From the NCBI GenBank assembly GCA_038496445.1, contig JALMLS010000356.1, forward strand, positions 62,001 through 126,000: DNA of 64,000 bases, read 5' to 3'. Shown in pieces: positions 8,085-29,591 of this stretch (position 1 is the first letter of the stretch; each line of letters begins with the position of its first letter). The notes beneath the pieces were generated by a model, which was not told where the DNA came from, made no database searches, and worked only from the letters and a program-made list of their open reading frames with translations. The position numbers were made by a program, and so were the translations under genes. The stretch is from Trichosphaerium sp. ATCC 40318 (taxonomy: Eukaryota > Protista > Tubulinea).

Positions 8085-9150
8085 ATGTCCATAGTTACAT
8101 CCAAACGCACTGTACATTTGTTTTTTTAAATGAATGTTTGAATAAACTCTAACAAACACCTTGTAGATAACAGCCACAACATGCATAAATTATCATCTAG
8201 TACACCTTCCAGTTGAGCTACAGCTTGATATAATCGACATGGACTTTGAAGCGTATTTAAAATGGCCTCTACTATCGAAACAGGCTGCTTTGAACACGAG
8301 ATTTGATGCAGACCTGAATAAACATGGTAAATGGGTAAAAAAGAAAAGAACCAAAGATGTCCACAATAGACTTCATCAAACAATAACTAAAAAGAAAGGG
8401 TATTGGATAAATGGTACACGTGATGGTGAGTATAAATGTTGGCATGATAATGGGAATCTAGAAAAGCAGTGTTACTATATAAATGGTAATCTAGATGGAG
8501 AATACAAACGTTGGCATGATACTGGTCAGTTGTGGGAGAAGTGCCAATATGTTAATGGTAAACAAGAAGGAGAATACAGTCTTTGGTATACGTCCGGTAA
8601 GATGTTTAAACATGGCGTGTATGCCAACGATAAGCTGAACGGAGATGCTAAGTATTGGTATTCATCCGGCCAATTGAAAAAACACTTTTGTTTTGTCAAT
8701 GGTAAGCTTGACGGAGAGCAAAAGGAGTGGTATAGAAACGGTCAATGCAAGACTGCTCGTTTTTATGTAAATGATATACAGCATGGGGAGCATAAAGAAT
8801 GGTATGAACATGTTGGCTCAATGTTATGTCATGGTTATTATACCAATGGTGAACCTAATGGTGAGTTCAAATGGTGGTATGATAATGGTGTATTGGGAAC
8901 ACATAGTCAATATGTTAATGGTAAACTTGAAGGAGTTAGAAAGATCTATCACTATAGTGGTCAACTAAAAGCCAATTGTCAGTATGTAAATGATAACCGA
9001 GAAGGTACTTACAAAGAATGGTATAGTAATGGGAAATTGAGGACAAGGTGTAATTATCTTGGAGGAAAACTTGATGGAGAATTATTGACATGGCATATAA
9101 ATGGTGAGTTGGAGAGCTACTTGATATATGAAAACGGTTTCAAAGTCTAA
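8085..9150 (+). CDS. F-box-like + MORN-variant (YwqK-like) repeat protein
   Basis: Exon 1 MSIVTSKRT (8085-8111), intron 8112-8166 (GTACAT...CTAAC...TTGTAG), then in frame 'LVHLPVELQLDII' F-box-like motif and about 11 repeats of type 'GEYKxWYxNGQL....YVNGKL'. Confidence 0.8.
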
Positions 9151-16742: not shown

Positions 16743-17394
16743 ATGATTCAAGCTACAACTGCTCTAATTGCTCTTTTATTTGTTGCCAGTGCGCTTTGCG
16801 CGAATGTTAACGCCACTATATCAAAAGTAAACAGTATTGGTCCATGCAGCACTTACGAGCGTGAAAAATTAAACGAGGGCTACTTCACGTGTATGTACAA
16901 AGATCCTGTTGGTATCCCTACCATTGGTGTCGGTTTTAACCTACAAAAATCTGGAGCACGTGCCCAAATACAAGGAGTAGGCGCTGACTACGATAAAGTA
17001 CTTGTTGGTACGCGCTAAGAAAATTTCGACAACTTTTTTTATATCACGTGAAATTTGTCCCTGACTTTAGTTCCTTTTTTGTGTAGGTACCGAATGCTTG
17101 AACGACGGGCAAATAAGAACTTTGTTTAACCAAGATATTGCCACAGCATTAAGCTGCGCAAAGTCTTATGTAGGCTCAAACTTCAGCAGGCTTACAAGCT
17201 CTCAAGGATCCGCTATTGTTGATATGGCGTTTAACTTGGGTTGTCCAAGACTTGGTGGTTTTAAAAACTTGCAAGCAGCTCTTCAGTCATCACCTCCAAA
17301 TATCGCAAACGCTATTGCTGAAATGAAGGATTCCGCTTGGTGTGTACAAGTTAAGACTAGATGTACTCGCGACGTTGCTTGTATGAACAGTTAA
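16743..17394 (+). CDS. Secreted phage-type (GH24/T4-like) lysozyme
   Basis: Signal peptide; 'NEGYFTCMYKDPVGIPTIGVGFNL' (E...D..G..T catalytic motif); 'AIVDMAFNLG', 'MKDSAW..QV..R'. One intron at 17008-17086. Confidence 0.9.
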
Positions 17395-17749
17395 TACGCA
17401 AATAAAATAAATGCTTATTATGTTGGTTTTGTTTTCCGGAGTATCCTCATCAGTCATTGGTATTGAGGACAAAGGCGTTGTAAATGTCGTATAAGGTTCC
17501 ACCATACTCCAGAGTGAGTGTGTTAATACGTTTTGAATAGCGTAGTGGTTAGTACGCGACATAAACAATAGTGTACCAGTCATTTACAAACAAAAAAAGC
17601 CTGAACAAAGTAAGGTACACTCTTCGAAAGTAAGAGACACCACAGTCTTGCCTCTACCTGTTAATTACAACATATGCGATAGCACAACGTGTTGGATACT
17701 TTTCAGCGCTCGAATGCCTTCAAGGTTTATGTGGTAGTTTGGTATTTGC

Positions 17750-17759
17750 AAAAAAAAAA
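17750..17759 (-). terminator. Oligo-T Pol III terminator of the tRNA-like RNA
   Basis: Ten T on the minus strand directly after the 3' strand (CACCAC) of the terminal stem; no run of 4 or more T inside the unit. Confidence 0.7.
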
Positions 17760-17997
17760 GTGGTGATCGCATCACGTGACTTTAAATTTTATTAGTCCAG
17801 CCAGGGTTTATCTTAAACCACCAGCCGGACTGATGAAACGATGTAATTATAAACTCTTACTAGGAGTACGCTCTACCACTGAGCTACCAGGCTAACCGCC
17901 CCTTGCAGATATCACTGCAAGAGGCGTAATCGGCGCCTGAATCGGATTCGAACCAATGACCTTAAACGATGAAAGACACGTTGACTATCTGCACCAC
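17750..17997 (-). ncRNA. Candidate Pol III RNA with circularly permuted tRNA-like domain (YrlA/Y-RNA-like, or permuted pre-tRNA-Thr(AGT))
   Basis: Minus-strand order: GTGGTG...ACGTGTCTTT, AGGTC, T arm ATTGG-TTCGAAT-CCGAT, TCAGGC, 12-bp hairpin, GCCTGG, TA, D arm GCTC-AGTGGTA-GAGC, ACTC-CTAGTAA-GAGT, second hairpin, AAAGTCACGT...CACCAC, T10. Confidence 0.8.
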
Positions 17998-18019
17998 ATT
18001 AGTAGATCTGGGAGATAAC

Positions 18020-18028
18020 TTATTTAAC
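18020..18028 (-). promoter_or_regulatory. TATA-like element upstream of the tRNA-like RNA
   Basis: TTAAATAA about 23-31 nt upstream of the predicted +1 G (17997). The background is AT-rich, so this is weak on its own. Confidence 0.35.
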
Positions 18029-18639
18029 TACGAACAAATAAAAAAGAAAAAAATTGTGGTAATAACTTTCAGCTACGACTGTATTTGTAGTGAGAATAGG
18101 GTGATACCTACTGATTTTGTTAAGAAATTTTGTTTTTACACTACTGTCTGGGTGACAACTCATTCTAATATATTTCTCTGATAGCCACACAGTACGACAG
18201 ATTCAAAGAGCAAGTGACCAGTAAAATAGTTTCCTTTCTCGAACTTGTTACTATTTTGGTCTGAGCGTATAAAAATACTGTGTTGTTCAGAGAAATTTAG
18301 TTTTTTTCCATTCTATGTCAAGTCAATTCGAATATTTGGGTGTACACAGTATTCAAAAATGTCATCATGGCCACAAGACTACCAGTTCACTACTCAGGCG
18401 TCTATAGCGAGTAGCACAAAGTAGTACAAATTCTGCTGTTTCCAGAAAATAGCAAAGGTTTAGCACATGTTGTTTGCTGCCCATCTTTCGCACGTGATAA
18501 GAACAAACACATACCTTGACACTCGTATGTTTGTATCAGCACTTCCTGTATCTCAGACAAGACCGGCTTATTTAATAATCCCGAAGTTGGTTGTCAAAAC
18601 TTTATTTTATTGCCCGATGGACTCACAAACGCATCAATA

Positions 18640-19852: not shown

Positions 19853-20514
19853 TCATCGTCTTATATACCTTCCTTGAACACGTAGCATACCACTATCCCA
19901 CCATCTTTTAAAGTCACCTTGTAGCTTACCATTTACATAAGTACCGTGCTCATGTAGTTGCCCATTATTAAACCACACCTTATACTCTCCTTCTTTCTTA
20001 TCATTTACATAATTCTCATGTACTTTCAACAGTCCATTATCACGGTACACCTTACGCTCTCCTTCCCTTTTACCATTGATACAACACCAATGTTCATACA
20101 ATCGACCATTAGCATGCCATGTCTTATGCTCTCCTTCTTGGATACCATTCAAGTAAGTATACTCCTCTTTTACTTGACCATTAGTGTACCACCACTTGTA
20201 CTCACCATGTCGCTTACCATTCAACCAACTCTCTTGTCTTATCACATAGCCTTGTGAGTGTTCGTAGTTCTTTAACACTTTTAACCATTTCCCGTGTTTG
20301 TTAAGGTTGTAATCAAACCTTGTTGATGTTGCCGCTTGTTTTGATAGTGTAGGCCATTTTAAATACATATCAAGATCCAAATCAATTATATCAAGCTGTA
20401 GCTCTACTGGCAAGTCCAAAAGACTGTAGTAATGCGTATTAGCTGTTGTTAACTGTGAGGCATTAGGATAAAACATTTCTTTTTTGAACATACTTTGCGT
20501 TTTCTTTCTTCCAT
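19853..20514 (-). CDS. F-box-like + MORN-variant repeat protein (paralogue of 8085-9150)
   Basis: Exon 1 MEERKRK (20514-20494), intron 20493-20453, then 'LLDLPVELQLDIIDLDLDMYLKWPTLSKQAA' and about 5-6 MORN-variant repeats. Confidence 0.85.
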
Positions 20515-21130
20515 TTTTCCGGCCCCTATAAGATGCTCCTCTGGTGTTGAGTACTTTTTTTGACCAAATGGATTTTCTATGGCCCTCACATAAACCCATC
20601 GGAAAGTGCACGTGTATTTTTGTAATTCCTGCTGTGATAGCGGACAATAAGTCACCATAAACGTGTGAATATGTGATGTATGCTTTGTAAATCACTCACA
20701 AGGAAAGCTCAACAGAATAACAAAAATACTCATAGAAGCTGGCAAACTAAAATTAAAAAGTTAGATGAACCTCTTGGTTGGAACCAATAGTATAAAGCAA
20801 CGAGACTGGTTTGGAGGAAGACTTAACGTCTCGGTGGCTCAAACGTTAAGGTTTTTATATCTTGTACACGTGTTTAATGCAAAAATGGATCCTCAAATTC
20901 AGTTTTCAATAAATGCAAGTTTTTTAGGATCAGAAAAAGCCCCTTTTTCGTAAGGCGTTAGTTTTGATTGAATTTGGTTAGGGGGTTTGTGGGTGTTCGT
21001 TGCCATCGTATTATCTGTGCTTGCCACTTTGTGGAGAATATGAGAATATGATTGACGGCAATTGGTCAGCTAGATTCTTCAAACGCCTGGAATTCGAGAG
21101 AATATACAGACATTAGCTTCATTACATAAG

Positions 21131-22477
21131 TTATTGCTTTACAGTTACATGGGAGGTTCTGAGTAAGTTAATACAATCATTTGTCACATTTGAGCAACTC
21201 TTGACACCAATAGTTTGAACGCCTTTTAGTGCTTTGATCCCCTCATCTGAAACAGACGTTCCATACAGGTAAATGGTATGAACACCTCTGAGTGCTTTAA
21301 TACCTTCATCTGTAACAGATGTATGAGACAGGTCAATTGCATGAACACCTTTTAGTGCTTTAATACCTCTGTCTGTAATTGCTGTGCCATACAGGTAAAT
21401 GGTATGAACACCTTTGAGTGCTTTTATACCTCTGTCTGTAACTGCTGTGCCATACAAGTCAATGGTATGGACACCTTTAAGCGCTTTTATACCTTTATCT
21501 GTTACTGATGTGCCACAAAGATTGATGGTATGAACACCCTTGAGCGCTTTAATACCTTCATCTGTAACTGACGTTCCATGAAGATAAATTGTATGAACAC
21601 CTTTGAGCGCTTTTATGCCTTCATCTGTAACAGCAGTCCCATACAGGTCAATGGTGTGAACACCTTTCAGTGCTTTTACGCCCTTATCTGTAATTGATGT
21701 ACCAGAAAGGTTAATGGTGTGAACACCTTTGAGCGCTTTTATGCCTTTATCTGCAATGGATGTACCAGAAAGATTGATGGTATGAACACCTTTGAGTGCT
21801 TTAATGCCTTTATCTGTCATACGCTTACACCCAGAAAGGTCAATAGTATGAACACACATCAATTGTTTCAGATCGTTGTCACAAACGTCGTTGTCATTTG
21901 CTTGGATATTACGGCATCCACCTAACAATGAAAATACTGTGTCTTGACATTTTATTCGAATCGATGTGTTGTTCATGACACCTTTGTATTGCCTGATCTT
22001 TAAAATGTCTAGTACAGAATGGAGATGAACCTTCTTATATCCTACAATATCATGTATAATATCAGCCATGACATGACATGATTGAGCAATAGAGAATCTA
22101 TCACGAGCGCCAGTATGATAAATAATAGTTGAAATGATTTCTGGAGGAAAATCGATAATATTAAGCTCATTACCACGTGTTTCTTGCGTACTTGTTGTGC
22201 ATTAGATAAACGAAACCACAAAACACGTGTTATTTTGAACGTACTCTAATTTAAATTCATTGGATGGCTTCAAACCTTTATTCTCTATGTTATCTGCGTG
22301 CTGTAAAAGAAGTTTGTCGAGACGGTTTACAAGGCTTAAATTAGCTTGCTTCACTAAACTTTCGAGGTCTTTTAAGAACGTTGTCTTGTGTTCTTTCTCA
22401 ATTGTGTTGAATGTATCTGTGTGGTTTATATTGTAGTACGCGAGTGCTTTTTCTAATTTAAAGCCAGAGAAGCTCAT
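21131..22477 (-). CDS. F-box + leucine-rich repeat protein (21-aa repeats)
   Basis: Exon 22477-22245 joins via intron 22244-22191 in frame to 'NIIDFPPEIISTIIYH' (F-box), followed by about 11 near-identical repeats VHTIxLxGTxVTDxGIKALKG. Confidence 0.85.
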
Positions 22478-27908: not shown

Positions 27909-29591
27909 ATGCAGAAATTAGAACAAAAACGGAAGCCAAATTACAGTACTCGGGTTTGCTCTGTTCTACAACTTCCAAATGAACTTCAGACGTACATATC
28001 TACGTTTGATCGGGAAACGTTCTCAAAGTTCCACGTGCTATCAAAAAGAGCTGCTACGAACACACATTATGATCAAAATCTGAATAAAAAAGGTGTTTGG
28101 ATTTTTTGGTATGATGATGGCTCTCGAAGGAAAACAAAAACGATGTTCAAAGGTAAGCGACATGGAGAGATGAAGAAATGGTATAAGAACGGACAGTTAT
28201 TGCTCCAGGCTTGGTACAGCGATGATGAGATGCATGGTTTGTATAACAGTTGGCATGAAGATGGACAATGTCATGAAGAATGTACTTTTGCTAGTGGCCA
28301 GGAGAATGGAGACGTAAGGCGGTGGTATGAGAACGGACAAATAATGGTACATAGTAAGTTTGTTCACGGAAAAAGGAATGGTGAGAGCAAGGTGTGGCAT
28401 GACAATGGACAACTCGAATGGGAAACCTTCTTTGTTGATGGCAAAGAAAATGGTGAATACAAAGAATGGTATGATAATGGACAGATGCATATTGTTACTG
28501 TGTATGTTGACGGCTTAAGGCAAGGCGATTTCAAAACGTGGTATAAGCACGGTCAAATAAAATCAACAAAAAAGTATGTTGACAACAAGAAGCATGGCGA
28601 AGTCAAAGAATGGTATTATGAAGGACAACTTGCACTGAATACTACATTTATTAATGGCGACCAAAATGGTGAGCGTGTGGAGTGGTATGAACATGGTCAA
28701 GTTAAAGAACAAAGTACATGGGTTGATGGGAAAAAAAATGGTTTTCACAAGCAATGGTATGAACATGGTCAAGTTAAAGAACAAAGTACATGGGTTGATG
28801 GGAAAAAAAATGGTTTTCAAAAGCAATGGTGTGAGGATGGACAACTTGATTGGCAAAGTACATGGGTTGATGGAAAACCAAATGGTTATTGCAAACAATG
28901 GCATGAGAATGGACAACTTGCTTATCAAACAATGTATGTTGATGGCAGGGAGAATGGTGAGAGCAAACAATGGTGTAAGGATGGACAACTTGTGATACAA
29001 ACTACGTATGTTGATGGCAAGCGCAATGGCGAATACAAACAATGGCATGAGAATGGACAACTTGCGATACAAACTACGTATGTTGATGGCAAGCGCAATG
29101 GCGAATACAAACAATGGCGTTGGGGTGGACAACTTGCACTACATACTACATTTATTGATGGCAACCAGAATGGTGAGCGTATGGAGTGGTATGATAATGG
29201 TCAACTTAACACACAAAGTATGTGGGTTGATGGAAAACCAAATGGTTATCACAAACAATGGGAAAAGAATGGACAACTTGTGATACAAACTACGTATGTT
29301 GATGGCAAGCGCAATGGCGAATACAAACAATGGGAAAAGAATGGACAACTTGCGATACAAACTACGTATGTTGATGGCAAGCGCAATGGCGAATACAAAG
29401 AATGGCGTTGGGGTGGACAACTTGCTTGGCAAAGTACATGGGTTGATGGAAAACCAAATGGTTATCTCAAACAATGGCATGAGAATGGACAACTTGCTTA
29501 TCAAACAATGTATGTTGATGGCAGGGAGATTGGTGAGAGCAAACAATGGTATAAGGATGGACAACCCAGAGAACCAACACTAGACTTTTGA
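27909..29591 (+). CDS. Intronless F-box-like + about 21 MORN-variant repeats
   Basis: 'VLQLPNELQTYI...LSKRAATNTHYD' is homologous to the two paralogues; 23-aa repeats; single 560-aa ORF. Confidence 0.9.
   Translation: MQKLEQKRKPNYSTRVCSVLQLPNELQTYISTFDRETFSKFHVLSKRAATNTHYDQNLNKKGVWIFWYDDGSRRKTKTMFKGKRHGEMKKWYKNGQLLLQAWYSDDEMHGLYNSWHEDGQCHEECTFASGQENGDVRRWYENGQIMVHSKFVHGKRNGESKVWHDNGQLEWETFFVDGKENGEYKEWYDNGQMHIVTVYVDGLRQGDFKTWYKHGQIKSTKKYVDNKKHGEVKEWYYEGQLALNTTFINGDQNGERVEWYEHGQVKEQSTWVDGKKNGFHKQWYEHGQVKEQSTWVDGKKNGFQKQWCEDGQLDWQSTWVDGKPNGYCKQWHENGQLAYQTMYVDGRENGESKQWCKDGQLVIQTTYVDGKRNGEYKQWHENGQLAIQTTYVDGKRNGEYKQWRWGGQLALHTTFIDGNQNGERMEWYDNGQLNTQSMWVDGKPNGYHKQWEKNGQLVIQTTYVDGKRNGEYKQWEKNGQLAIQTTYVDGKRNGEYKEWRWGGQLAWQSTWVDGKPNGYLKQWHENGQLAYQTMYVDGREIGESKQWYKDGQPREPTLDF
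28600..29565 (+). repeat. 69-bp coding tandem repeat array with near-identical units
   Basis: Units such as ACAAACTACGTATGTTGATGGCAAGCGCAATGGCGAATACAAA occur four times exactly. Confidence 0.85.

Follow-up and report, generated by a model that had tools for sequence, protein, structure and literature searches.

Thirty-four permuted tRNA genes are known from red and green algae, a nucleomorph, and one archaeon (PMC3978253). Their hosts are Cyanidioschyzon merolae, Ostreococcus and Micromonas, the Bigelowiella natans nucleomorph, and Thermofilum pendens (PMC3978253). The published junctions between the two tRNA parts lie at positions 20/21, 37/38, 50/51, or 59/60, and all of them have a bulge-helix-bulge (BHB) motif, at which the tRNA splicing endonuclease is thought to circularise the RNA (PMC3978253). 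The spacers between the parts are 1-74 nt long, and the genes have a TATA-like box and a T stretch (PMC3978253). Full-text literature searches returned no report of permuted tRNA genes in amoebae or other heterotrophic protists.

Two other kinds of RNA bear on such an arrangement. YrlA RNAs are tRNA-like Y RNAs of bacteria and phages (Rfam RF02553; 10.1101/312249). They have no anticodon loop; a terminal stem replaces the anticodon stem and carries the Ro60 site (10.1101/312249). The other kind is a synthetic permuted mimic of a nicked tRNA, which is man-made and has its nick in the anticodon loop (PMC10159003). RNA nicks are sealed by ligases such as NgrRnl and DraRnl, and the eukaryal members of this group have no known natural substrate (PMC4408790, PMC5397189).

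The locus described here belongs to Trichosphaerium sp. ATCC 40318, a host that, unlike those of the published permuted tRNA genes, is neither an alga nor an archaeon. It combines a permuted layout and an intact tRNA core with the lack of a BHB, and its leader, 3' half, spacer, and 5' half are transcribed in two slightly different copies. These points we regard as firmly established. What becomes of the transcript? A plausible reading, which we put forward tentatively, is that the RNA is processed by tRNA enzymes and then persists as an unjoined look-alike of a tRNA.

Layout of the permuted tRNA-Thr(AGT) unit

The unit lies on the minus strand of the window, that is, of the whole 64-kb stretch of DNA that was analysed. 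In transcript order it consists of a T-rich tract, a TATA-like box, a leader of 27 nt that starts at 17990, tRNA positions 43-73, a spacer, tRNA positions 1-42, a trailer, and a run of ten T residues (T10). An earlier note on this DNA had placed a circularly permuted tRNA-Thr(AGT) at 17853-17963, and sequence reading together with ARAGORN shows these coordinates to be exact. The 3' part of the tRNA occupies 17963..17933 (positions 43-73, with A43 at 17963 and C73 at 17933). By sequence reading, ARAGORN numbering, and Rfam, it contains the variable loop (AGGUC), a T arm (AUUGG/UUCGAAU/CCGAU) whose B box is perfect, and the 3' strand of the acceptor stem (UCAGGCG) together with C73. The 5' part occupies 17893..17853 (positions 1-42, with A1 at 17893 and U42 at 17853) and was delineated in the same way. 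It contains the 5' strand of the acceptor stem (AGCCUGG), a D arm (GCUC/AGUGGUA/GAGC) whose A box is perfect, and an anticodon arm that reads UACUC/CUAGUAA/GAGU. The anticodon called by ARAGORN is AGT at 17859..17861 (A34 = 17861) in the loop CU-AGU-AA. Between the two parts, a spacer of 39 nt (17894..17932) closes the acceptor stem; folding predicts a 12-bp hairpin inside it at 17897..17926, and the spacer is found in RNA contigs. Like the published permuted tRNA genes, the unit thus has its 3' part upstream of its 5' part on the same strand, and its spacer closes the acceptor stem and falls within their range of lengths.

When positions 1-42 are joined in silico to positions 43-72, the product is a 71-nt RNA that ARAGORN calls tRNA-Thr(agt), in keeping with the permuted layout that had been claimed. 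The anticodon stem of the joined form has 5 bp, as the earlier note had drawn it (TACTC/GAGTA around CT-AGT-AA), and the pair U27:A43 closes this stem across the joint. The joint itself falls where it had been placed, at 41/42 or 42/43 within the 3' strand of the anticodon stem. Its position is uncertain by a single base, since U is the last base both of the leader (17964) and of the 5' half (U42); in other words, the two cuts yield an identical product. By sequence reading with ARAGORN numbering, the bases that make tertiary contacts are all kept (U8, A14, G15:C48, G18, G19, U54, U55, C56, A58, G26.A44, C13:G22-G46, U33, and A37). The T stem contains one U.G pair.

A cloverleaf that is perfect in its decoding loop and in the pair across the joint argues for a true permuted tRNA-Thr(AGU) gene whose RNA would be matured by a route independent of a BHB, an explanation that is possible but doubtful. 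The complete cloverleaf with all of its tertiary-contact bases also argues for the unjoined look-alike. However, a mere look-alike would need neither a flawless Thr(AGU) anticodon stem-loop (U33, A34, A37, A38) nor a Watson-Crick pair U27:A43 across the break. The sole flaw of the joined tRNA-Thr(AGT) is at the end of the acceptor stem, for which either six pairs or an A1:G72 mismatch had been noted. The stem begins with the A1.G72 mismatch, continues with four Watson-Crick pairs and U5:A68, and then has G7.U66. Such a mismatch is unusual in an elongator tRNA, which counts against a true tRNA gene and favours a functionless rearrangement (discussed below).

The permuted arrangement is not due to chance. 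A canonical B box (GGTTCGAATCC) and a canonical A box/D arm (TAGCTCAGTGGTAGAGC) each occur exactly once in the 64-kb window, and the two lie on one strand in inverted order, separated by 57 nt. A brute-force scan of permutations by ARAGORN, for which recovery of the Thr gene served as the positive control, found no tRNA in the neighbouring 221 nt. Likewise, no collinear tRNA was found in the whole 64 kb (ARAGORN reported 0 genes, and Rfam none at the gathering score). The window yielded no further permuted or tRNA-like units elsewhere and no second copy of the Thr unit. In public metagenomes, neither an exact 35-mer nor a degenerate permuted Thr(AGT) pattern had a match.

The Rfam tRNA model does align collinearly with 17893..17798 by borrowing the trailer, at 26.8 bits against a gathering score of 29. 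This alignment would suit an ordinary collinear tRNA pseudogene, in which the trailer after the 5' half holds the decayed 3' half and the 3' fragment upstream is unrelated and there by chance. Furthermore, CCUGGCU in the trailer, taken as the acceptor 3' strand, would give a pair A1:U72. However, the score comes almost entirely from the perfect 5' half, and a 28-nt insert stands in place of the T arm. The trailer shows no similarity to the 3' half (882 of 2000 shuffles), and a 6/7 complement at some point in a trailer of 95 nt is, by a rough estimate, expected in about one case in eight. The upstream 3' part, for its part, matches the 5' part in both the acceptor and the anticodon stem and in every tertiary pair. 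The pseudogene reading is therefore disfavoured and, in our judgement, very improbable. A separate candidate, a relic of tandem duplication with decayed outer halves, was also rejected: the leader compared with the 5' half and the trailer compared with the 3' half gave no significant similarity.

Transcription signals and RNA contigs

Because the perfect A and B boxes stand in inverted order, normal internal-promoter action is impossible. The unit has signals of its own on either side. A TATA-like box (TAAATAA, 18020..18026), promoter-like by sequence, lies 30-36 nt upstream of the RNA 5' end. This end is an A at 17990, because a contig of run X2 spans 17921..17990 and is then directly followed by the Illumina adapter AGATCGGAAGAGC. 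Contigs of the same run give no coverage upstream of the RNA 5' end, at 17997-18500. On the downstream side, the T10 run at 17750..17759 resembles a Pol III terminator; it was recognised by sequence reading, and no RNA contig extends to it. A trailer of 93 nt lies between U42 and this run. The inverted A and B boxes, the TATA-like element upstream, and the T stretch downstream are all shared with the published permuted tRNA genes.

By these signals, the Thr(AGT) unit looks like an independent minus-strand gene of Pol III type that encodes a small RNA. The earlier note had treated the tRNA unit as a gene, and both the promoter-like and terminator-like signals and the RNA contigs that cover the unit agree with it. 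Possession of its own signals speaks for a true tRNA gene. The inverted boxes and a TATA-like box 30-36 nt upstream of the RNA end are counted in favour of the unjoined look-alike as well.

The RNA data are assembled contigs of four public runs, which show presence and not absence. Coverage in run X2 is patchy, as is usual for RNA. Two contigs of this run span 17862..17950, one of them like the reference and the other a variant. The variant carries two changes in the spacer and one extra U in the D loop, which brings that loop to the standard 8 nt. A second copy of the Thr unit is therefore expressed. The two expressed copies differ at 3 of 89 positions (~97% identity), and their tRNA stems are identical. 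In the spacer of the second copy, one change turns a U.G pair into U-A and the other breaks a pair. Two expressed copies with identical tRNA stems are what a true tRNA gene would lead one to expect. Against selection for an unjoined look-alike, so small a difference means that the intact features may reflect youth instead.

Together, the contigs cover the leader, the 3' half, the spacer, and the 5' half, and the trailer is covered by no contig. The RNA that is observed still carries leader and spacer. The joined 42|43 form (...CUAGUAAGAGU|AAGGUCAUUGG...) does not occur in the contigs of the four runs, although contigs cannot exclude the joint. The unit is known from its sequence and from these contigs, in which there is neither a circular intermediate nor a mature junction. 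Retention of leader and spacer without a joined form in the contigs is consistent with an RNA that stays unjoined, and the want of any junction-spanning sequence counts against a true tRNA gene. However, ordinary RNA-seq contigs seldom recover mature, modified tRNAs, so that the missing joints weigh little for the unjoined RNA.

The contigs of both expressed copies end at 17862, one base short of the wobble base A34 (17861). This is ~15 nt earlier than the variant sites alone predict for a 31-mer assembly. Why do they stop there? One possibility is partial A-to-I editing, with A/G heterogeneity from inosine at A34; another is fading of coverage at an RNA 3' end close to U42. Contigs that lack the trailer and end at this point are consistent with a trailer that is lost early or with A/G heterogeneity at A34, either of which would suit a true tRNA gene. 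As a specific sign of inosine the stop was set aside, since A34 partly read as G is indistinguishable here from plain coverage loss near the 3' end.

Fold of the transcript and possible fates of the RNA

The transcript is predicted to fold into a long imperfect hairpin, or rod. Within the leader (17964..17989), positions 17972..17989 form the 5' strand of a terminal stem of ~14 bp with small internal loops, whose 3' strand is 17765..17783. The upper part of the rod is a hairpin of the trailer at 17786..17839 (~23 bp including 4 G.U pairs), and the rod as a whole contains 34 Watson-Crick and 6 G.U pairs. Folding of the whole transcript gives z = -4.5. When the cloverleaf is enforced, the free energy is -77.6 kcal/mol compared with a free minimum of -77.8 kcal/mol. 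After removal of the tRNA unit, a 9-nt AT tail, and one copy of an 8-nt repeat, the flanks fold as a single continuous hairpin (z = -4.2). Because the flanks without the tRNA unit fold as one hairpin, the tRNA branches off sideways from the 5' strand of the rod. That cloverleaf and rod together lie essentially at the minimum free energy, with flanks that form one hairpin by themselves, argues for the unjoined look-alike. Folding does not tell the two strands apart (z = -3.7 and -3.8, equally good), and the strand call therefore rests on the tRNA itself and the adapter-marked RNA end. Pairing of leader with trailer is a further likeness to the published permuted tRNA genes. The two differ in that the published genes have a short BHB helix, whereas leader and trailer of the Thr unit form a rod of ~37 bp with an extra hairpin.

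The 8-nt direct repeat (CATCGTTT) occurs at 17964..17971, where it abuts A43, and again at 17836..17843, 9 nt after U42 (both by sequence reading on the minus strand). The GUUU of the second copy pairs with 17786..17789. The copy in the leader can pair there instead at a cost of 2 kcal/mol, and in this alternative the helix is carried right up to A43. The rod and the flanking repeats, which the earlier note had missed, open rival readings of the locus as a lasting tRNA look-alike or as the product of an insertion.

An insertion product would be a young, transcribed, functionless rearrangement. A tRNA-derived circle or tandem fragment (43-73, spacer, 1-42, AT-rich tail) would have entered a Pol III hairpin gene that already existed and duplicated an 8-bp target, and the tRNA features would be intact because the insertion was recent. 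A tRNA-derived SINE or retro-pseudogene would be a dispersed element in many copies, with target-site duplications and an A-rich tail; the Thr unit has the 8-nt flanking repeat, the 9-nt AT tail, and one near-identical copy in RNA, and no other copy in the 64-kb window. The repeats on either side of the unit and its tail, restoration of a continuous hairpin on deletion of the unit with one repeat, and the ~97% identity of the two expressed copies support an insertion. However, the repeat is not significant when leader and trailer are shuffled (469 of 2000), and it has a structural reading in which its two copies are rivals for a single pairing partner. Nor does either flank look like a decayed tRNA half. 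Taken as a whole, we find such a rearrangement rather unlikely.

How would the two halves be joined, if they are joined at all? A BHB could not be built by the earlier note, and a more formal search leads to the same result. Helix-bulge-helix structures with 2-4-nt bulges were sought by hand and by script for both cuts (41/42 and 42/43). The best was a 4-bp A/U helix with 2-nt bulges, which is at chance level, being equalled in 776 of 2000 flank shuffles. A joint at 41/42 or 42/43, in the anticodon stem and without a BHB, sets the Thr unit apart from the published permuted tRNA genes. No known ribozyme family, nor any other relevant Rfam family, was matched at 17300-18100 (E <= 10). The lack of a BHB above chance and of a known ribozyme family favours an RNA that is left unjoined. 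Spliceosomal back-splicing at GUAAGAGU / UUUAAG|G was considered by sequence reading and rejected, its product being no tRNA.

If the unit is a true tRNA gene, its halves would most plausibly be joined without a BHB, by trimming to the stem and subsequent nick sealing. Endo- or exonucleases would trim leader and trailer to the anticodon stem and leave a 3'-OH and a 5'-phosphate. The nick would fall within duplex RNA (28:42|27:43, stacked on the D stem), and a nick-sealing RNA ligase that uses ATP, of the Rnl2 or Rnl5 type, would close it. RNase P, tRNase Z, and the CCA-adding enzyme would open the acceptor loop. To our knowledge, no enzyme cuts at the 41/42 or 42/43 sites, which tells against this route. 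In its favour, the joint lies in a helix and not in a loop, as a nick-sealing ligase requires. Nick-sealing ligases for which no substrate is known are also present in amoeboid protists (PMC4408790, PMC5397189). A permuted tRNA with a closed acceptor stem has, like the nicked tRNAs of PMC10159003, the topology of a tRNA that is nicked once in its anticodon arm. Unlike the nick of the man-made mimic, that of the Thr unit would lie in duplex RNA, the substrate class of Rnl2/Rnl5 ligases.

In the reading that we put forward tentatively, the RNA would persist without such joining. In the predicted fold, a complete but permuted class-I tRNA-Thr(AGU) cloverleaf is inserted in the 5' strand of the rod; the 39-nt hairpin spacer closes its acceptor stem, and its chain is open within the anticodon stem, at 41/42 or 42/43. 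The tRNA-shaped domain may be recognised by RNase P, tRNase Z, and the CCA-adding enzyme, which would open the acceptor loop. The product would then be a two-piece or rod-borne look-alike of a tRNA, which either corresponds in eukaryotes to the Y RNAs of the YrlA type or mimics a nicked tRNA. It would not be a precursor circularised by the splicing endonuclease like the algal permuted pre-tRNAs.

Evidence for a likeness to YrlA comes from the Rfam YrlA model, which aligns the T arm, the loop-closed acceptor stem, and the D arm with E = 0.004 (801 bases searched). The score of 25.8 bits is far below the gathering score of 69, and the Thr RNA is not a YrlA member. The sub-threshold alignment nevertheless follows the YrlA layout, with T arm, loop-closed acceptor stem, and D arm in the same order. 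As in YrlA, the two ends of the RNA form a long stem with each other, and all tRNA tertiary contacts are kept. One YrlA is cut by RNase P and gains CCA (10.1101/312249), which also favours this reading. However, YrlA has no anticodon loop, whereas the Thr unit keeps a full anticodon stem-loop and has its rod branch off sideways at 41-43. The context of the Thr unit is also eukaryotic and Pol III-like, unlike that of YrlA. No match to Y_RNA was obtained at E <= 10, and no Ro60 gene was seen in the 64-kb window.

A transcribed permuted tRNA unit with an in-stem junction, no BHB, and a different kind of eukaryotic host would have one of two meanings. Either there is a second, BHB-free way of rebuilding a tRNA from a shuffled gene, or eukaryotes too make stable tRNA mimics of the YrlA type. 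Maturation by nick sealing would, if true, provide the first natural substrate for Rnl2/Rnl5-type ligases. It is probable that this amoeba-like heterotroph has a whole family of Pol III genes in which the back part of a tRNA precedes its front part, the tRNA branches from a long hairpin, and the break falls in the anticodon stem. The RNAs of this family would be either matured independently of a BHB, by trimming and an Rnl2/Rnl5-type ligase, or active in the unjoined state as the first eukaryotic YrlA-like mimics. Either meaning bears on the disruption of tRNA genes and on the role of orphan RNA ligases in amoeboid protists. It bears likewise on tRNA annotation, as standard finders miss such genes entirely.

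Neighbouring sequences and other genes of the window

An 80-nt piece on the plus strand at 17484-17563 has a 7-bp closing stem (AUGUCGU/GCGACAU) and a D-arm-like hairpin (GCGU-AGUGGUUAGU-ACGC). Its depth in run X2 is 1323, compared with 30-90 for the Thr unit, and it was found in run X1 as well. Differing sequences continue on both sides of the piece, one of them T-arm-like. ARAGORN found no tRNA in 17484-17563, collinear or permuted. The piece could represent a small RNA of high abundance or a dispersed repeat that is related to tRNAs. Next to it, 17570-17621 on the plus strand weakly matches a C/D-box snoRNA model, SNORD72, at 27.4 bits where the gathering score is 43; it has a CUGA box and a terminal stem of 8 bp. 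This match is probably due to chance.

On the plus strand at 17300-17417, contigs of three runs stop at 17400-17417, just past AATAAA motifs. An mRNA of the plus strand probably ends here, and the tRNA-like gene is therefore probably intergenic.

Further along the window, three paralogous genes at 8239-9150 (+), 19853-20695 (-), and 27909-29591 (+) encode bacterial-type MORN_2 repeats (PF07661, YwqK-like) and share the N-terminal motif LSKQAA..T.FD..LNKHGKW. In a word search, matches to the protein of 27909-29591 were 23-45% identical, and the few that named an organism were bacterial, including Parachlamydiales; the protein of the window itself is absent from the collection that was searched. 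Three look-ups of exact proteins and an Atlas search gave no match. Ten other ORFs of the window had no match in Pfam. On the minus strand at 21131-22069, an ORF of 312 aa contains about ten near-identical leucine-rich repeats of 24 residues each (GVHTI.L.GT.VTD.GIKALK).
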